Shown piece by piece: positions 4,189 through 18,967 of a stretch of DNA of 19,366 bases. A program made the position numbers and the translations under genes. Below the pieces are notes generated by a model. That model saw only the letters and a program-made list of their open reading frames with translations, was not told where the DNA came from and ran no database searches. Origin of the DNA: Ginkgo biloba (lineage: Eukaryota > Plantae > Ginkgophyta); NCBI GenBank assembly GCA_024626585.2, contig JANKJI020000004.1, forward strand, positions 154,707,954-154,727,319, in the 5' to 3' direction. Positions within the stretch are counted from its first letter, which is position 1. Each line of letters opens with the position of its first letter.

Positions 4189-4660
4189 GTGCTTGGGTTG
4201 GTGGTGAACAGGTGACTGGGTTGGTAGCAAACGGCTCATTGGGTGGCAACGAACAGTGTACACAATTAGGCGAACAACTAACTGGGTGACAGCGAACGGC
4301 TAACTGGAGGGCGACGAACGACCAACTAGATAGTGGCAAACGATTAACCGGATGGCGGCGAACGACTCACTTGGTGGTAGCGAACAGTTGACTGGAGCAG
4401 CGAACGATTGACTCAATGTAATGAACGGTTGATTGGGTGCAATGAACAATGTGCACAGTTGGGGCGAACGATTGTTAAGGGCAGCGAATAGTGTGCACAG
4501 TTGGGGTGAACAGATATTAGGGGCAACGAACGATGCACATAGTTGGGGTGAACGGATGTCTAGGGCAGTGAACGGTGTACACAATCCCGTGAATGAACAG
4601 ATCGACAACAAACGGTCTATGTTATTCGACGAACGGTAGGTTGGCCAGCAATGAACAGTG
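4189..4660. repeat. GC-rich minisatellite, ~20-22 bp units with a GAAC core; 42-bp higher-order repeat in the right half
   Basis: GAAC-like cores (GAAC/AAAC/GAAT) at 4206, 4229, 4251, 4272, 4294, 4316, 4338, 4360, 4382, 4402, 4423, 4444, 4466, 4486, 4508, 4528, 4550, 4570. From 4444 the spacing alternates 22/20. Confidence 0.85.
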
Positions 4661-5703
4661 TACAACAGATGGTCTGTTTCCTCATTTGAAAAAGGGATCA
4701 TTACACAAAAACAGTTGATGCTCCAGAGTACCAAACTTTAAAAACGGAGACAAACCTAATAAGGTACTACAATAGAAATANNNNNNNNNNNNNNNNNNNN
4801 NNNNNNNNNNNNNNNNNNNNNNNNNNNNNNNNNNNNNNNNNNNNNNNNNNACACGGAACCAAACTCAATATGTCACAATAAAAAAAAAAAAAAAAAAAAA
4901 ATGCAATAAGAAAAAGTGAAAAACCTTAACTAACACTTTCTTGCTTACTCTTTAAAGGACGGTTTCAAATAAAGACATATGGCAGAAATCGTGTGCATTA
5001 AATATTCCAAAAGGATGGTCTGATGGAAGAAAACTCCATAACCAAAATTTCAGGAAAGCGAAGGCAACCTGATTATAAAGAGGGGCATCTGATTGTAAGA
5101 AGCGGATAAAAACAGGAATCAGCATATGCTCAGTGTATGACTTTCTTTCTAACTCTTGCCCAAACCCTTAGAACTAAAAACAATCAACAAACCATACAAC
5201 TGTCTTTATTACAATTAAAGGCTCTTCATGGCATCTGGACTCGGATGTATCATGGACCTTTTAGCCTGTAAATCTTTTGTTTCTCTAAGTTATCTATAGT
5301 CTGTCCTTGGCTACCTATCAAAGGCCCTCTCTGTTAGATGCCTGTTACCATCATCAACATTGAATCATAATGAGCAACGTTCTGTGGGGTCACCTTAAAT
5401 GGCAACACAAGAATATTATCTAGGAAAAGTGGCCTGCATTTTCTTTATTGAATCAATTAAGAAAGCAGAATTGAAATGTTTCTCTCACATTGCATATGTT
5501 TGACAAATTTTGCAGTGAGTGTAAATTTTTAGACATTACACAAACCACGAACTTTAGTAAGATAAATGGCCTCTAAATTGCATTCCAATATCAAAGTTTG
5601 ACCACCAGCTACATCTAAACTATCCACAGAAACTTGTGTTAAAGGAGCTCCAACCATGGGATGGAAAAGAACCAAGAACATCACACCCTAAATTTAGCCT
5701 TTA

Positions 5704-6328: not shown

Positions 6329-8429
6329 TCCCTTAACCTAGTATTCCATTAACGGTCCTCTCTTAGACGCCTGCCTTAAGATATCATCTATGGAATGGCG
6401 GCCTGTCAATCCAACTCTGCAAAACCCAATCCGGTCAGAGTCCTACCATCAGGACAACTTCTTCATCTTCTATTCCCTTGCAGCCTGCAAAGCCAAAGCC
6501 AAGATATTGCTTGTCATAATACAAGCAAGTGTGATCCAGATATTTTTCCCTGCGACAATCATCAACCAATGCTAAGTATTTCACCCCCATGGAGTCGAGC
6601 CACTACCATACACAGCATTAAATAGACCCCAAGTCCATGGTCGGATGTACCAGACTTGAGAACAGTTTAGCTGTTCTAGGAGGTAGTCGCCAACCATTGG
6701 TATCTATAGTTCTCTTCCAGCAAAGACATATCTTTTCCCCACACAGAAGGCAGGTACACCCGGTTTGAGAACGGAGGGCTGACCACCTAGGGAGCTTGTT
6801 TTACCTTGATTCTCCTTCATTTTTTACATAAGATGTCTCCTCAAGAGGACTTATCCGCTGAAAACACCAAGCATTGTTCTCTAAAACAACGAGATCTACA
6901 ATACCCCAAATCCCTTAGAATAGCATTCTCCCTCCGACCCATGTTCAATAACAGAATATTCATCTTGTGAATCCAAGCTAATACCACCGGTTAACAATTT
7001 TCAGCTCCGAAAAGCCTTGAAAATCTTAAAAAACAAAGACAGAGAAAGGAGTCAAGACAGAAACTCTTACCTTGTTATTGCATAACAATCATCAAGCGCC
7101 CACAACAATTCCTCCCAGAAAAGATATATGGTGTAATTCTGGCGCCTGGAGTACTTACTCTCTCCAACGGAGGCTCGGAAACATATATGCAAACTAATCT
7201 GAATGAGAAGGAGGAGGAAGATGGTAGATGAGATGAGAAGAAATAAGAGCTTCTGGATATTGAGGTAGAAGTCTTCTAGCGATTAAGCAAATGATCTTCT
7301 CTTGTCGTATCTACAGTTCCAGTTAATTTTTGTTATGTTTTCGTTAAGTTACTTAGAGGTTGGAGCCAAACCAAGACAAGAAACGATTTTTTTCACACAT
7401 GTGGCTAACATTGTAGGTTATTTCCTCCACGTCTCTCCAAGTGAACCGCATGAAGTAGACCTCGCCTTCACCCGCTTTTCAAAGGGGAATTTTCACCTCT
7501 ACCACGGTTAATAAAAATGTATGTATTGTGAATAAAGTTAATGTAATAAATATAAAAATTACACTTTATTGTCCTTTGTAGAGAGGAACGTGGGATTCAA
7601 GGATTTCATGTATGTAAAAAAGTTTACCATTACTCTTTTAACCCCCTTAGTAACTATAAGCGAATTGTGAAGAGCCTAGCATGAAAATTGGGTAGTTGTG
7701 TCCTCTGAATTGTGGTTTGTAGAAGCATCTTGAGTGGTAGATCAGGGCCAAGTCCTCTGGAAGGGGACGCTTGAGAGGGTGAGAGCCCCATCAGGTCTGG
7801 ACCCTNNNNNNNNNNNNNNNNNNNNNNNNNNNNNNNNNNNNNNNNNNNNNNNNNNNNNNNNNNNNNNNNNNNNNNNNNNNNNNNNNNNNNNNNNNNNNNN
7901 NNNNNTGATGTGATAGATATTAGATTCTAAATCACCTTTAATGTATAGAATAACAAAAAGATTCTTTATAGGTTGATTGGATGGCTTCACAAAGCAGGTA
8001 CATATCGACCTCAAGGTTATGCAGTCAACACGTAAGTGGAATTTTTTAGTTTTTTGGTTTTTGGCTTGCATAATAAATATCGTATAAGTGCGTCACACTT
8101 GCATGGTATTGTGTAGGTGTGTTCCCTAAGAGTGCACACTGTCACGATGAAGAGAAAACCACACATATAAATATTGTATAGGTATTTTGTTGAACTCGAA
8201 GGCTGTATGGGCAGTACAAGATGGCAAGAGAGACTATTTTTTAAGATGAAGAATATAGAAGAAGAAGAAAGAGTATTACCCCATTTGATTGATCAAAATT
8301 ATTTTCATTGCATGTTGACAACGAATGCTCCCGCACCAAGTGGATTCATCACACCATTACCTCTTTTTTAAGGATGAAATTAACCTTCCTTTTAAAATCA
8401 AGGTTGTGGTCCTCGTATTTTCTCTTTAA

Positions 8430-9805: not shown

Positions 9806-10016
9806 AATGAAACATAAATTAAAAATAAAATAACTATGTTTACAAAGAAACTAAGGGAACGCACTTTAGTAATCTTAATTTAATAAAATTTTATATTTTT
9901 ATTAGAAAAGGTAAAAGCACATTACATATGCAAGAAAATAATCAATTTGCTTTAATAAGAAAGGTGCTTAAATGAAACATAAATTAAAAATAAAATAATT
10001 ATGTTTACAAAGAAAC
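9806..10016 (+). repeat. 46-bp direct repeat pair (9806-9851, 9971-10016), 1 mismatch
   Basis: aatgaaacataaattaaaaataaaataa(c/t)tatgtttacaaagaaac occurs twice, 165 bp apart. Confidence 0.9.
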
Positions 10017-10017
10017 C

Positions 10018-10329
10018 TTTTTTTTTTAAAAGGTAAGTGCATTTATATTGCAAAAATTAGGATTACAAAAAATCTCATTGTCCATCTGGGTCAGAAAGGG
10101 AACCAGACAGGGTAAGGTGAGATAAGAAGTTTTGCATTACAAAGTAGCATCTCGCTATAAAATTGCATCACCAAAAAATTCCTCGTAGGGAAGCTTCACA
10201 ATAACAAAATTACAAAGAGCCAATGGTCCTGCCTACTATATAACTATCAACATCATAGAGAAATCATAGAACACAGAGAGCCTTCTTTCAGAGGTTTAAC
10301 GGAGCAAATAAAGCAACTTCTGACCATTA
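10018..10329 (-). mobile_element. Retroposed 3' end: poly(A) tail, poly(A) signal and U-rich 3' UTR (probably of the minus-strand LINE)
   Basis: T10 at 10018-10027 on +. Minus-strand AATATAAA at 10049-10042, several TGTAA motifs, and a stem-loop at 10082-10110. Confidence 0.65.
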
Positions 10330-10773
10330 TCATTGATCCTCTTAGTCGTCTGAGGAGCCTTCTGATCCTTCCATCCATTATGTATCCATGGAACTTTCAT
10401 CCTCAGTGGATTTTTAAGCCTTCTTCATTTCATTAAGCTCCTACTTTATTTTGTCCACTTTGATTTTTATTGTTCTTAGTCTTCTATTCAGTACATACTT
10501 GCGTCTTCTGAAGAGATCCTTCAAATTGGTAAGTTTCATTGATAATTCCTTGATTTGAGTAACCAAAGATAGAATATCCCTATCTTGCTTGGCCACTTGA
10601 GACTTTAATTCTTCTATGTATTTTTCCAATTGTTTGATCTTCTGAGCATCATCCATGCTTGCTGAGGAAGATGCCATAAAAGTAAAGAGATCCGAAGGCA
10701 AGGGAATTGCATCAACAATGTGAGACTGAACTACTGCATGGGTAAAAAAGGTATTAAGGGATAGCCACTGCAT
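10330..10773 (-). pseudogene. Coiled-coil small protein ORF with basic patch and acidic tail, in the LINE 3' region (candidate extra ORF)
   Basis: 110-aa ORF 10773-10441, likely start MASSSAS at 10677. Heptad-like IKQLEKYIEELKSQVAKQDRDILSLVTQIKELSMKLTNLKDL, then RRRKYVLNRRLR. The frame continues through TAG/TAA codons as *ELNEMKKA*KSTEDESSMDT*WMEGSEGSSDD*EDQ** to 10330. Confidence 0.55.
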
Positions 10774-11340
10774 GGTGAAAATAAAGCAATGCCAGTTGTC
10801 TAAGCCTATGCAGAGTAGGATAATGTACCAAGGACATCGATCACTTCAGGGAGGATAGCTCCNNNNNNNNNNNNNNNNNNNNNNNNNNNNNNNNNNNNNN
10901 NNNNNNNNNNNNNNNNNNNNNNNNNNNNNNNNNNNNNNNNNNNNNNNNNNNNNNNNNNNNNNNNNNNNNNNNNNNNNNNNNNNNNNNNNNNNNNNNNNNN
11001 NNNNNNNNNNNNNNNNNNNNNNNNNNNNNNNNNNNNNNNNNNNNNNNNNNNNNNNNNNNNNNNNNNNNNNNNNNNNNNNNNNNNNNNNNNNNNNNNNNNN
11101 NNNNNNNNNNNNNNNNNNNNNNNNNNNNNNNNNNNNNNNNNNNNNNNNNNNNNNNNNNNNNNNNNNNNNNNNNNNNNNNNNNNNNNNNNNNNNNNNNNNN
11201 NNNNNNNNNNNNNNNNNNNNNNNNNNNNNNNNNNNNNNNNNNNNNNNNNNNNNNNNNNNNNNNNNNNNNNNNNNNNNNNNNNNNNNNNNGGGAGGGGGGG
11301 GGGGGGGGGGGGGGGGGGGAGGGGGGGGGGGGGGGGGGGG

Positions 11341-13409
11341 CGCTTCAGAGAGTAAGGAGATTCAAAAGGCAGGGTCCCATATGGGCTTCAGGGATAACGA
11401 TTCCTATATACTTTTGAAAATTTTAGAAACAAGTGATTGAGAAGAGCAGGGAAATTCTCTAAAAATTAAGGAGTTTTGGGCCAGCTAAATTGACCAACAA
11501 GTGAAGGGGAGCAATAGAAGAAGAGCCTATTTCAAGAGACGTTTGTTATTGAGGGATTTTGGATAAGGTTTGGGCCACTGAGATAAGGTAGAGTGGATCT
11601 TATCAGAAAGGGAGAGAGGGTTTTTTAAGGATCTAGAGATGAGCAACCACACCTCATAAGAAAAACAACATAACGAGAATATGTGAGAGACAAATTCTTT
11701 CTAGGCTTTGTAAAGGGAGCATCTATTGGGAAGAGAGAGTCCTTTATTGTTTAGGTTGTCGAGGGTAAGAATTTTATTGTGGACTACAAACAAGAAAAAT
11801 ATAGCTACTTTTGGCCAGAGCTTAGAATTCTAGCCTAACTTCTAGTAACTTCTTTTTAGGGGAAGGACCTCTATCTATTGATGAGTAAGGATATCATACC
11901 CAATGGAGACTAGGTAGGAAGTATGATTTTTCTTTTCCATACATACAATTCTATCCTTCTGATCGGATGGAAAGTATCTTAATTCCCAAATACTATCCAT
12001 CAGTAGGGAGTAATCTTCAAGTGGGAGGTTTGGATCCCTCCAGTCTTGAGAGAAATTCGAATCCTATATCTGTAAGTTTGCATTGCCTTTGGAGGGGTAA
12101 TCCTTTTTGTTGAATTCCTTCAACTTTGTAATGAATTTTCTCTCAAAGAAATCCATGATACCAACAAGTTGGGGATTGTTACTGAGAGGGGGATTTCCAT
12201 TCGAAGAGTCTCTCTAGAAGTTTATAAGATTACCACTGCCTGCTTCCCATGAGACAAAATTTTGAATAAGTTTACTGTCATTAACAATGTTGTTCCACAA
12301 GGATCATCCTTTAGGAAAGGTTTGAGATCAAAAGGCATTTAATTGGGACCATCCTCCCATACATTTCCCCAAAAGTATCCTTTTCCAGAGGTTAAGATTT
12401 CTAGTGATCAATCTCTATAATTTCTTAGCTCCCAAAGCTTTATAGAAAAATGAGAGTTTCTTTATACCTTCTCTACCTCTATCCTTTAGAAGACATATCG
12501 TGCTCTAGTTCAAGAGATGAAGACCTTTCTCCTTCTTCCCTCCTTTCCAAATATTTTTTTAGAAATTCTTTTCTATTTTTATCAGGGTCGACTAAGGGGG
12601 TGTTAGAATGGAACAAGCAAAAATAGGGAGATCAAAGAGAGTGCTTTTGAGGAGAGTCAACTTCCCTGCTAAATTTAGCCACTTTGAAGACCAAGAAGAG
12701 ATTATTTTCCTAATATTTTCTAAAATCCAAGTCCAATATTTCCTATAGCTTACTTTAGAGTGGATAGGGACCCCTAGATAAGGAAAGCCTTTTACTAGAT
12801 CCCCTAAAGGAAAATTGAGGACCTTACATAGGTTTCCTTTTTAGGGTGAAAGGAAAGTTATAGCAGAAGATGGATAATTTTTTTTTATTTATAAGGACTC
12901 CTGATGATGACATGAATTTATTCAAATTTTCTTTCAAAATCTTGGCCTCTGGGACATTAGCTTTATTCAGCAGGATTATATCATCCATGAATTGGGAATG
13001 GGAGACTCTTAGAGCCAAGGGAAATTTTTTTGCAACTGAGATTCTTTTTGTGCTAACTTATAAGGAGAGAATCCTACCCATGGATTATACCAGAAGGATA
13101 TAAAGGAATAGAGAGAGAGGACACCCTTACCTTAGACCTCTTGAGGCTTTAAAGAAATCTGTTGGGGAGCCATTTATCAAAATAGAGAAGGAGGGATTTG
13201 TTATACAAACTTTGATACAATTAAGAAGAGATGTACTAAACCCAAAATTCTTCAAGACATTAAGCAAAAATATCCAGTTGACTCTATCAAAGGATTTATC
13301 CATATCCAACTTTATGACCATTACTTTTTTATTAGAGGAGAGGGAAGAATGGATTAGTTCTTGAATAAGGACCACACTATCTAAGATTTTCTTTCTAGGA
13401 ATAAACCCC
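11341..13409 (-). mobile_element. L1-type LINE ORF2 remnant (reverse transcriptase + zf-RVT), decayed
   Basis: GFIPRKKILDSVVLIQELIHS...KLDMDKSFDRVNW...INGSPTDFFKASRGLR*GCPLS; SHSQFMDD (YADD-type motif); YLGVP. A zf-RVT-like WPKVAIF...NKILTLDNLNNKGLSLPNRC...HIFSLC..SYEVW lies near 11650-11820. Many stops and frameshifts. Confidence 0.93.
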
Positions 13410-14034
13410 NNNNNNNNNNNNNNNNNNNNNNNNNNNNNNNNNNNNNNNNNNNNNNNNNNNNNNNNNNNNNNNNNNNNNNNNNNNNNNNNNNNNNNNNNNN
13501 NNNNNNNNNGAACTTTAGAAGTTAGATAAAGATAAGTGGAAAAATTTTGAGAGATAGCATGAGCAAGGGCTCAAATATATTGTGTATCAAGCGAGGATGA
13601 TACAAGAGCATCATCACATTATGGGAATTTAGACAATTTTGATTAACCGACATTATTAGGGGAGGACTCAATGATAGGGTAAATTGATAATATTGATAAA
13701 AGGGAGTCTAAGACTGAAAACCAATAAGATGAGGTGGTTATCGATGGATAACACATCATTAAGGATAATAAACCCTTTACGCTAGAGCTAATAGATGAGT
13801 AAGAGCCAGTGGATTAGGCCGTAAATAGTATATACCTGATAGGTACTTTTTATATCTTGATGGCATCAAACACCATGGATAAAATTCCACAGAAGCCTTG
13901 GAGAAATATTTTTAAAAAATAGTTAAAGAAAGATTAAAATTTGGTGTAGTCAGCGGGTTTCACCAAGACACATTTTGAAGACTTGAATACCCACCTTGCG
14001 AGTTTTGTTGAGCCACGGGAGCAAAACACATTTT

Positions 14035-14571
14035 AAAGCCCAAATCAAACCCCTTCAAAGCTGACGGATTTTCTAGAGAGGAGGGCATGGTACTTGTCAA
14101 AATATTGGTACTTACAAGATCGCTCAAATTTATAAGGAGAGAGAGCCTGGCTGAAATATTTCCACTCAAATAGTTATACGTCAGAGCTGAAGTATGTAAA
14201 TTGCGGCATCCAGTGAGAGTACTCAGAATGTGGCCTTCCAGTTCATTCTTCTCCATCGCGATAACCCTCAACTGCGAAAGGCGTCCCAACTGTGGAGGAA
14301 TGAGGCTGCCTAAATGATTATTGCTCAGTGAGAGAACTTGCAGTCAAAAAAGTCGGTTCAATTCTTGTGGAACATTACCATGGAAAGAGTTATTAGAGAG
14401 ATCGAGGAACTGAAGAAAGGACATATTGCCAATAAGAGTAGAAATGGAGCCCTCTAAATCCATGGAAAATACATTGAGTGAAACAACTCTTTGTCTCCTA
14501 TTGCTGCATTTAACACCACTCCAACTACAAAAGCTGATGTTGGGCATCCAATTTTGTAACAAATTATGCGG
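14035..14571 (-). pseudogene. LRR receptor-like kinase N-terminal fragment (LRRNT_2 cap + ~5 plant-type LRRs), LRR-XII-like
   Basis: PHNLLQNWMPNISFCSWSGVKCSNRRQRVVSLNV...LEGSISTLIGNMSFLQFLDLSNNSFHGNVPQELNRLF*LQVLSLSNNHLGSLIPPQLGRLSQLRVIAMEKNELEGHI... ORFs 14344-14577 and 13960-14289 are one frame broken by a single TGA at 14346-14344. No signal peptide; LRR similarity ends near 14035. Confidence 0.92.
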
Positions 14572-14666
14572 CAACACAAGTGGACTGCATTTCAGATGGA
14601 TGTGAAATCAACCTTCCTCAATGGCTATATAGATGAGGAAGTCTATGTGGAACAACCAACAGGTTA
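14572..14666 (+). mobile_element. Ty1/copia reverse transcriptase fragment (RVT_2)
   Basis: QHKWTAFQMDVKSTFLNGYIDEEVYVEQPTG matches the copia QMDVKSAFLNG..EEEVYVEQP.G motif. Runs into a gap. Confidence 0.92.
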
Positions 14667-14766: not shown

Positions 14767-16294
14767 GACAAGGGGCCTGGTGATTCTTTAGAAGAATAAT
14801 ATTTTCGTGGGTTCTAAAGAGGACCATAGTAGATTTTGGATTACAACGTGAATGCATATCCTGATAGAGGATAGGGATTTCTAGATATATAATGTTTATG
14901 GGCCATTCATAAATAGAAAGAAAATCTTGGTTTAGATCCTTTTGGAAAAGAGCAAAAGATCTTAGTGTAGTCAACTAGATTGTGGGTGGTGATCTAAACT
15001 TGACTTTTTCTAGAGAAGAGAAGATAGGAAGCTTATGGAAAGAAGCACCATCATTAGAGTCTTGTATCGCTGGGATGCAAGACTTTAGGTTGGTGGATGT
15101 TAAATTGAGATTTGGTTCCTTCACATGGTTGAACAAGAGATTAGGGGTTTCTTATGTGTCAGAGCACCTTGATAGATTCTTGGTGAGTGATAGTTGTATC
15201 TCTAGTTTTTTAGGCTTGGAATCCAAATTTTGCTATAGTAGAGCTTTTAACCATAGACCAATAAGTTTGGAACTTTTTTCATACCCAAGCCAACCAAGGT
15301 TCCCTAGAAGTTTAATCCCTTGTTGATTCAAGAGAATGTTTTTTTGGAGAATATTTGGAGATGGTGGAGAGAGGGAGCTCCCTCTTTCGGTATGAAAATG
15401 TACAAGTTTGTCATAAGCTAGCCTTTGTCAAATCAAAGATAAATGACTAGGACCACTATATCTCAGAGAAAAAGAAAGAGGCAAAGAGGTTGGCAGACTG
15501 AAGTTTAGCCTTAATACAAGAGGAAATTGATAGAGAGGGTCTATCCTGCACCTGGCAGGAAAAGAAGGAGCAGTAGTCAAGGATTTAGATATGTTGTAGG
15601 AGGAGGAAGAAAAATGGAGGCTAGAGTCCAGGATGAATTGGTTGTCGTTCAAAGACAAGAATACTTATTTTTTCCACAAAGCAACAACTCAACAGAGTTT
15701 AGCAAATTACATCGGTAAAATCAAGAAAGGCAATGGGGTCTGGTTGAGTTCACAAGAGGAGGTGAGAGAGAAGGTTGTTAGATATTTCTCATCTCTCTTG
15801 TTAGAGGAGTAGACAGATAGGTATGTTGCTTAAAATGATATTCTACAAGTGATTCCTAAGTTAGTGTCAGAAGAAGAGAATGTTCTCCTAATCAAGCCAA
15901 TCTTTATGAAGGAATTGGAGAATGTGTTTTTTAGCATGAAGATGACAAATCTCCAAGACTAGATGGATTCCAAGCCAACTTTTTCAAATCTAGTTGGAAA
16001 GTGATTAAGAAGGATCTNNNNNNNNNNNNNNNNNNNNNNNNNNNNNNNNNNNNNNNNNNNNNNNNNNNNNNNNNNNNNNNNNNNNNNNNNNNNNNNNNNN
16101 NNNNNNNNNNNNNNNNNNNNNNNNNNNNNNNNNNNNNNNNNNNNNNNNNNNNNNNNNNNNNNNNNNNNNNNNNNNNNNNNNNNNNNNNNNNNNNNNNNNN
16201 NNNNNNNNNNNNNNNNNNNNNNNNNNNNNNNNNNNNNNNNNNNNNNNNNNNNNNNNNNNNNAATGTGGTTCTATCTCAAGAGGTCCTTCACTAA
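14767..16294 (+). mobile_element. Second L1-type LINE ORF2 remnant (endonuclease C-term, linker, start of RT)
   Basis: IVGGDLN...FTWLNKR...EHLDRFLVS...NHRPI (endonuclease); EEEEKWRLESRMNWLSFKDKNTYFFH; DGFQANFFKSSWKVIKKD; NVVLSQEVLH after the 244-N gap. Confidence 0.92.
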
Positions 16295-17201: not shown

Positions 17202-18198
17202 TTCCTCCTAATTATCTCACATGTACTGCGTAGCAAAGCCATGGGTATGGTTGGCTGCCAATCTATAAGAAGCGCCTGCACTACCTACAAATGATGCTCT
17301 CAAACTCTCCAACATCTCTCATAGTCGGTCTTTCTTGAGGTGACTCTCTTGTGCACAACAAACCAACGTGTAGTAATGAAATGACAAAGTTTTGGTGAAC
17401 ATCGTTAATTCAGTCCATTATTTCTCCTCCCACATCCCTTATTAGCAGGCTGGGATTGACAACATCCACCACTGTATTAGGAAAAACTGAACTCACCCAC
17501 TTGTGCAGGTTCAGGTCTCCCGCAAACATCTCATGGGTTGGCCGCTTTCTTGTAAGCATCTCTAAAATCATAACGCCATAGCTGTACACGTCTCCTTTCG
17601 TAGAAACCGTTCCACTCAATCCATATTCTACATTCAAGTCGAATGATCAGGAATATCAAATTTTGCATATGCAAACCAAAATTGTAAATTAGAAAGGAGG
17701 CAATTTTGCATACCTGGGGGAATGTAACCAATGGATCCTTTTACTGTAATTGTTGACGTGTACAAATCCATGGAATTTGCACAAGTTATTCGTGCGATAC
17801 CAAAATCCGATACACGTGCAGTCATATTTTCGTCCAGAAGCACATTGCCAGGCTTTAAATCACAATGCACAACTTGAAAAGGAGAGTAGTGATGCAAATA
17901 TTCCATAGCATGGGCAATGTCTATCGCTATGTTTACTCGTTCCCTTAACTTGAGTTCACAAACAATATCACTATACAAATGCTTTTCCAAACTTCCGCTT
18001 GGCATGTACTCAAGAACAAGGGCTTTGAATTGGAGGTTTGAACAAGATGTTACGATTTTCACAAGATTTCTGTGCCGAACTCTGCCCAATGCTTTGCATT
18101 CCATGCTAAAACTCTTGTGAGCTTCTTCATTCTGCAAATTGAGAACCTTGACGGCAGCAATTGTTCCATCGCTCAAAATGGCTTTATAGACCGCTCCG
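17165..18198 (-). pseudogene. LRR-XII-type non-RD receptor kinase domain (EFR/Xa21/FLS2 family), disrupted; 5' part lost in a gap
   Basis: GAVYKA..AVKVL..ECKALGRVRHRNLVKI..VVHCDLKPGNVLLD..VSDFGIAR..KGSIGYIPP|EYG..GDVYSYGVMILEMLTRKRPT. In-frame TGA at 17412-17410, after which homology continues (VISLLHVGLLCTRESPQERPTMRDV). A frameshift precedes LESLRASFVGS; probable original end SDTSSTL* at 17167-17165. Confidence 0.93.
17628..17713 (-). other. 86-bp GT-AG intron in the kinase domain
   Basis: CCA G|gtatgc...aatgtag|AA TAT GGA restores GYIPPEYG, the conserved LRR-XII intron position. Confidence 0.92.
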
Positions 18199-18967
18199 NN
18201 NNNNNNNNNNNNNNNNNNNNNNNNNNNNNNNNNNNNNNNNNNNNNNNNNNNNNNNNNNNNNNNNNNNNNNNNNNNNNNNNNNNNNNNNNNNNNNNNNNGT
18301 AAGTTATGGATTGGTGTATTAGGTTTTGTGTAAGGAAACATCGTTCTAGAAGTTCTATATTCATTTTTGGGCTCCTATAGAGAGTACCATATTTGTGCAT
18401 ATAGTATCGTATTCGTGTTCTCTCCTAAAGAACACATTGACATTGTATAACCTAAAAAGGTGCACAAATACACAATATCTGACTGTAAATGTGTGTTTCC
18501 ACAATACTCGAGGAATTGACTGTACAAAAAGTAGAAAGAGGCCATACAAGTTGACAAAAATATAATTTCCAGAGCATCAGAGAGTGCAGGGAAGATACGC
18601 TTTCACATACCTTTGAAATCCTCCAATTATCAAGTAAGTACATCAAGGATACATTGTAGAATCTAGAGTCTAGATAAAAAGGGATAAAATCCTCTTTTGA
18701 TAGAAATCCCCTAGTGAGGTTGTCTTGATGTAGAACAAGGCTAAGGAGGATCTAGGCAAGCACTTCAAGTTCTAGTGCTTATGGATAGGNNNNNNNNNNN
18801 NNNNNNNNNNNNNNNNNNNNNNNNNAAAAATATTTTTTTTTGGACATCATTCTTTCCTATTTTTTATATTTTGATTTTGCATATAAATCTTTTTTTATAT
18901 TACTTTATGTTTCTTATTTAAGTATTTTTTTAGATTACATTGAAAGATCTTATATTGTTCATATGTT

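Follow-up and report, generated by a model that had tools for sequence, protein, structure and literature searches.

Plant retrotransposons of the L1 type have been described as carrying two genes, ORF1 and ORF2, and in most of them ORF2 combines a reverse transcriptase (RVT_1) with an RNase H domain (RVT_3), the known extra domain of these elements; an extra ORF, the antisense ORF0, is known from primates (PMC5203782). The open-access literature that we searched describes no sense ORF located 3' of ORF2 in plant L1 elements or LINEs. LINEs are generally taken to require ORF1 and ORF2 alone. Here we describe a window of 19,366 nucleotides from Ginkgo biloba, the whole stretch of DNA analysed, in which the minus strand carries a decayed L1-type ORF2 remnant and, past an assembly gap, a short ORF in the same sense with the pattern of a leucine zipper. 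It is plausible that this zipper ORF is a gene of the LINE, and we assign a probability of roughly 0.45 to its being a 3' module borne by the element, either as a third ORF (ORF3) or as an extension at the C-terminus of ORF2. An earlier note, made from the letters of this DNA, had listed on the minus strand the ORF2 domains, the gap, a stop at 10808-10806, the ORF, the in-frame stops that follow it, the hexamer AATATAAA and a run of ten A, and each of these was found in its place.

The ORF2 remnant and its neighbourhood

The LINE remnant occupies positions 11342-13409 of the minus strand and extends from the reverse transcriptase to the tail that follows the zinc finger; it is truncated at its 5' end and broken by in-frame stops. 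RVT_1 is recognised by Pfam at 13130-13408 with 33.1 bits (cut-off 29.6), and two weaker RVT_1 pieces lie near it. The zinc-binding domain of ORF2, zf-RVT (PF13966), follows at 11704-11829, as a fragment of 42 aa that covers profile positions 26-65 of 85 with E=9.6e-6 and, at 26.6 bits, stays slightly below the cut-off of 27.5. Two features of plant L1 ORF2s are present, in their usual order, RVT_1 then zf-RVT. Beyond zf-RVT the frame continues, interrupted by stops, as far as 11342, and the final 319 codons of this tail contain 10 in-frame stops. The observed-to-expected ratio of CpG in the remnant is 0.13. When the reverse transcriptase piece was used as a query, the sole matches were three short fragments, all at 52% identity or less, and the flank upstream of the LINE contained no match of at least 9 nt that could represent a target-site duplication. 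Under the LINE-borne reading, to which as a whole the above probability applies, the minus strand would hold the 3' terminal part of a plant L1 LINE of the RNase H type, an old copy truncated at its 5' end, in a gymnosperm-like genome.

Several other fragments surround the remnant. On the minus strand lie pieces of Xa21/FLS2-like LRR receptor kinases, comprising an LRR exon (13963-14607) and a separate kinase exon (17410-18341); the LRR exon is N-terminal (LRRNT_2, LRR_1) and breaks off close to where the LINE begins at its 5' end, and the kinase exon is interrupted by a gap. The plus strand, opposite in direction to the reverse transcriptase, has a 115-codon open stretch at 14979-15323 that by eye is like a LINE endonuclease in its C-terminal portion and has no match in Pfam; if real, it may be a second LINE fragment. 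At 14566-14666 (plus strand) a short piece that resembles, again by eye, a motif of copia-type reverse transcriptase (RVT_2) runs into a 100-N gap. A stop-free stretch of 145 codons at 4303-4737 (minus strand), the second longest in the window, consists of internally repeated units rich in Cys, Pro and Gln and has no match in Pfam. Just past it, a run of 22 A (4880-4901) adjoins a gap and may be the tail of another retroelement. Outside the window, a contig of JGI metagenome 3300072920 encodes at 7951-8352, beside a Ty3/gypsy element, a plant LRR receptor kinase whose N-terminus is close to window positions 14344-14607; since this contig resembles the LRR exon of the window, the metagenome holds DNA of a related plant.

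A zipper-coding frame and its 3' end

On the far side of the gap the minus strand is free of stops over 134 codons (10845-10444), a run length that the earlier note had missed, and the frame closes at a TAG (10443-10441), so that the whole feature covers 10441-10845. It contains an ORF of 110 aa starting at Met 10773 (10773-10441) and an inner Met at 10677, from which the product would have 78 aa and begin with MASSSAS; upstream of this second Met, 56 codons are free of stops. The run is the third longest of its kind in the window, where only known relics of coding sequence exceed it, and the kinase exon, the LRR exon, the endonuclease-like piece and the reverse transcriptase are among the other longest ones. 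Run length alone is nevertheless weak evidence of coding, because base composition leads us to expect about 0.1 stop-free runs of at least 134 codons per window by chance.

The residue pattern within the frame is more informative. Residues 11-52 of the 78-aa product (10522-10647, minus strand) form a six-heptad leucine zipper with I, I, V, I, I and L at the a positions and L, L, Q, L, L and L at the d positions. Its heptad score is 11.7, compared with 3.9 +/- 1.5 in shuffles of the same residues (z of about 5), and none of 2000 shuffles reached this value; the Fourier power of hydropathy at a period of 3.5 residues is 92, against 12 in shuffles. Tandem Repeats Finder detected no tandem repeat in the DNA under the zipper, and the heptad pattern is therefore not the product of a DNA repeat. 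AlphaFold2, run with no alignment, predicts for the 134-codon stretch a single long and confident helix that spans residues 66-133 at pLDDT of 85-95; the 56 residues that precede the helix have low pLDDT. The same predicted helix includes a basic patch, RRRKYVLNRRLR, at residues 57-68 of the 78-aa product (10474-10509, minus strand), which may serve to bind nucleic acid or to target the protein to the nucleus. As a homodimer, the 78-aa product is modelled as parallel and in register, with an ipSAE of 0.50, compared with 0.00 for the best of three controls. The closest contacts of the model are made by a and d residues (14, 17, 21, 24, 28, 31, 35, 38, 42, 45 and 49), contact agreement among runs is at least 89% and the pLDDT of the partner at least 82. 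Among proteins of solved structure, 21 of 30 that form pairs of one chain attained the mark applied to such dimer models, compared with 0 of 23 that are single chains. The model thus supports self-pairing of the zipper, as a predicted pairing.

Could such a frame have arisen by chance in the AT-rich 3' untranslated region of a LINE and never have been coding? The expected frequency of open runs would allow it, AT-rich DNA yields peptides rich in K, E, I and L, and neither the protein representatives nor the word search (see below) produced a relative. Against a chance frame stands a heptad register kept over 42 residues, for which shuffling of the very same residues gives a z of about 5 and which has no DNA repeat behind it; real coding relics are also found among the longer open runs of the window. 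We regard this explanation as extremely improbable. Since the heptad statistics, the helix model and the modelled dimer agree, we conclude that the zipper ORF is the relic of a real coding sequence.

The earlier note had combined the coiled coil and the basic patch with an acidic tail, obtained by reading through the TAG at 10441 and the stops that follow to a protein of about 115 aa. The coil is borne out by the shuffles and by the AlphaFold2 helix, on which the patch also lies; the tail is not supported. In the proposed read-through segment (10327-10440, minus strand), three further TAA stops lie in frame (10416-10414, 10380-10378 and 10344-10342), followed by TGA TAA at 10332-10327. Of the codons that a single transition would turn into a stop, 0 of 11 were hit in the open 134 codons and 4 of 5 in the following 36 (p=0.0027 by Fisher's test, or 0.048 when the count starts at Met 10677). 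With 4 stops in 36 codons, stop density past 10441 equals or exceeds the background of the window, 0.062 per codon, and an alternative frame is more open than the ORF frame across the segment. That a single C>T change separates each stop from a Gln codon carries no weight as an argument, because this is true of every TAA or TAG. In favour of the longer product, the amphipathic pattern persists for about nine codons beyond the first stop, and the tail reads as a coherent, acidic and disordered segment. Given the clustering of the stops, we consider it very unlikely that a full protein of about 115 aa with an acidic, Ser-rich tail existed and was later broken by four stops; this is a sub-claim about the length of the product and not a separate outcome. 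All searches used the separate pieces of the frame, one at a time.

In the simplest reading, TAG 10441 closes the coding frame, and all that follows, the read-through segment included, is 3' untranslated; because the amphipathic pattern runs on, the true end could lie about nine codons later. The non-coding 3' part measures about 415 nt. Its remaining portion (10018-10326, minus strand) has stops in all frames and contains a sequence resembling a poly(A) signal, AATATAAA (10049-10042), and then A10 (10027-10018), one of just two A/T runs of at least 10 in the window. Neither a plus-strand gene beneath the untranslated region nor any RNA family or tRNA was found. Two direct repeats of 46 nt, 98% identical and 165 nt apart (9806-9851 and 9971-10016), start one base past A10. 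We rejected these as a target-site duplication of the LINE; they possibly represent a local partial duplication.

The gap and the origin of the zipper ORF

The junction between LINE and ORF falls inside the interval 10863-11341, which consists of a sized assembly gap of 427 N (10863-11289) and an adjoining homopolymer run (11290-11341). On the minus strand this run amounts to about 50 C, and on the plus strand it appears as 26 and 20 G with single interruptions; it is probably an artefact of sequencing or assembly at a contig end. An artefact-like run that abuts the gap lowers our trust in the scaffold join, and the fact that the gap is sized implies paired-read support. The overlap between the two flanks of the gap was not significant. 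Met 10677 lies about 960 nt beyond the end of zf-RVT, and from this distance and the architecture of plant L1 elements (PMC5203782) we infer that the RNase H domain would lie within the gap. A motif search of the window gave no match to RNase H, and the 56 codons with which the open stretch begins after the gap gave no RNase H signal or other match in Pfam, the PDB or ESM Atlas. Next to the gap, in a different frame, is an open piece of 18 codons (10806-10862, minus strand), GAILPEVIDVLGTLSYSA, which terminates at the TAG at 10808-10806; it is a possible end of ORF2, of just 18 aa. The 56 codons that are open before Met 10677 mean that the zipper could instead be an in-frame C-terminal extension of ORF2 and not a separate ORF3. 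As a lead only, the codons directly before this Met may be loosely like the C-terminal motif of RNase H, and if they are that motif, the zipper would be such an extension.

Four observations favour membership in the LINE. The ORF has the same orientation as the ORF2 remnant; the spacing from zf-RVT to Met 10677 leaves room for RNase H and a short tail; the unit closes with a signal-like hexamer and A10; and the CpG ratio of the ORF (0.15) equals in its depletion that of the LINE and is unlike that of the kinase exon (0.67). Against membership, the junction falls in the gap beside the artefact-like run, no target-site duplication was found to bracket the unit, and neither flank of the gap gave an RNase H signal. 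Stop-prone codons, moreover, were hit in 0 of 11 cases in the open stretch but in 10 of 28 in the ORF2 tail (p=0.037). The open stretch is thus less decayed than the tail and may therefore be a younger, separate insertion. Of the accessory sense ORF that the earlier note had placed downstream of ORF2, what stands is a coiled-coil coding relic in sense orientation, with the remnant of ORF2 on one side and an end resembling poly(A) on the other.

We searched for relatives of the ORF in several collections. The 110-aa ORF had no phmmer match at E<=1e-3 among 1.84 billion representative proteins, and for the 78-aa product both the word search and the look-up of the exact product were blank. Pfam returned only generic coiled-coil families below threshold, with no match to bZIP, Transposase_22 (PF02994) or RRM. 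A known host gene or transposon ORF, a match to which the earlier note had asked about, thus did not appear in the protein collection, the word search or Pfam. In ESM Atlas the nearest named clusters were bZIP, with scores of 0.85-0.87 that serve as leads only, and the others were unnamed bacterial helices. Neither a back-translated scan nor an exact 21-nt scan revealed a second copy of the ORF in JGI metagenomes, and viral contigs scanned with the ORF, the reverse transcriptase piece and a reverse transcriptase alignment yielded nothing. Five JGI contigs (75 kb, around the receptor-kinase homologues) contained no LINE, and gypsy and copia elements instead. As a calibration of the protein collection, the kinase exon of the window matched proteins of Ginkgo (67%), Taxus chinensis (65%) and Cryptomeria, which marks the DNA as gymnosperm-like. 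With these proteomes included, a conserved host parent gene should have appeared, although a fast-evolving small coiled-coil protein might not.

These searches bear on the possibility that the ORF is a retrocopy of a polyadenylated RNA other than that of the LINE, derived from a small host leucine-zipper gene or the transcript of another element, and acquired through separate insertion, template switching or 3' transduction. The layout is indeed that of a small mRNA, with a leader, a Met-Ala-Ser-rich start typical of plants, a short ORF, an untranslated region, a hexamer and A10. The ORF has also decayed less than the LINE, and nothing ties it to ORF2, because its 5' end is hidden in the gap. 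Yet no parent gene or orthologue emerged from the 1.84 billion representatives or the word search, even with gymnosperm proteomes included (the proteome of the species itself is perhaps absent, the best kinase match being 67%). The depletion of CpG is moreover the same as in the LINE, the orientation is shared with ORF2 and the spacing is that expected for the end of ORF2. On balance we consider a retrocopy, the main rival of the LINE-borne reading, rather unlikely.

Alternatively, the two sides of the gap may be unrelated, in which case the piece past the gap would derive from some other element (it might be the N-terminal coiled coil of a LINE ORF1-type protein, or part of another transposon protein) and A10 would be incidental. 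The poly-C run at a contig end suggests a weak scaffold join, and fragments of LINE, copia-like and receptor-kinase sequence are intermixed in the window. Several points argue against this explanation: no Pfam family of ORF1 proteins (Transposase_22, RRM or zinc knuckle) was matched, no RRM-like sequence follows the coil, and the sized gap speaks for a supported join. In addition, LINE fragments usually retain their 3' ends rather than their 5' ends. We hold it to be quite unlikely that the sides are unrelated.

If the zipper ORF is borne by the LINE, the end of ORF2 would come after the gap, with a short coding module immediately downstream in the same orientation. This module would comprise 78 aa from Met 10677 (or 110 aa from Met 10773), possibly in frame with upstream sequence over 134 codons, and would encode a parallel, dimeric leucine zipper running into a basic amphipathic helix. 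Its frame would close at TAG 10441 or a few codons later, before a 3' untranslated region, the hexamer and a remnant of poly(A). Within the ribonucleoprotein of the element, we infer, the module would contribute dimerisation and nucleic-acid binding, as do the coiled-coil ORF1 proteins of other LINEs. A broader proposal, that a gymnosperm L1 lineage regularly bears past RNase H a sense gene or ORF2 extension for a dimeric protein of leucine zipper and basic helix, is at present doubtful.

Should a third coding module prove recurrent at the 3' end of plant L1 elements, their annotation would change, and 3' regions recorded as untranslated would need to be scanned for genes. It would be a further case of modular gain, following the acquisition of RNase H. 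The module could take over oligomerisation from ORF1p or add to what ORF1p does there, or could tether the ribonucleoprotein to nucleic acid or chromatin, and would offer a small testable protein, a dimer with a basic helix, for studying the assembly of plant LINE ribonucleoproteins. The finding is an ordinary one if the ORF proves to be an isolated retrocopy or an artefact of scaffolding.

Comparison with known systems

Among bZIP and other small leucine-zipper proteins, about six heptads, Leu at the d positions and a basic helix recur as they do here. We rejected the assignment of the zipper ORF to bZIP: its basic patch (57-68) is C-terminal to the zipper (11-52), the reverse of the bZIP arrangement, and Pfam shows no bZIP match. 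Products of L1 3' transduction and chimeric retrocopies resemble the locus in having foreign sequence between the LINE end and the poly(A) tail; such transductions and retrocopies are single events.

Precedents for accessory ORFs on retroelements exist elsewhere. Primate L1 ORF0 is a lineage-restricted accessory ORF, although it is antisense, lies at the 5' end and has no sequence similarity to the zipper ORF. Captured extra ORFs are also found in bdelloid elements (PMC5408684), which are of the LTR type and again show no sequence similarity.

A nearer likeness is to the coiled coil of LINE ORF1 proteins (Type II, Transposase_22; PMC5940361, PMC5203782), in which a heptad coil lies beside a positive segment and self-association is predicted, and it is plausible, by analogy, that this coil is a functional counterpart of the zipper module in ribonucleoprotein assembly. 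ORF1p differs in being encoded upstream of ORF2, in forming trimers and in having an RRM and a CTD, whereas the zipper ORF is 3' of ORF2 and has neither RRM nor CTD nor any Pfam match; with I and L at its a and d positions, a dimer is favoured over a trimer. The candidate that the ORF is itself a Type II ORF1p (Transposase_22) was rejected, since it has the coil alone, no PF02994 or RRM match and a position 3' of ORF2. The locus as a whole compares most closely with plant L1 elements that carry RVT_3 (PMC5203782), with which it shares the order RVT_1 then zf-RVT, room for RNase H, an A-rich tail and 5' truncation. It is unlike them in that the site of RNase H is here a gap, and in the putative sense coding module past that site, for which the papers searched give no counterpart in the described elements, with their ORF1 and ORF2 only.
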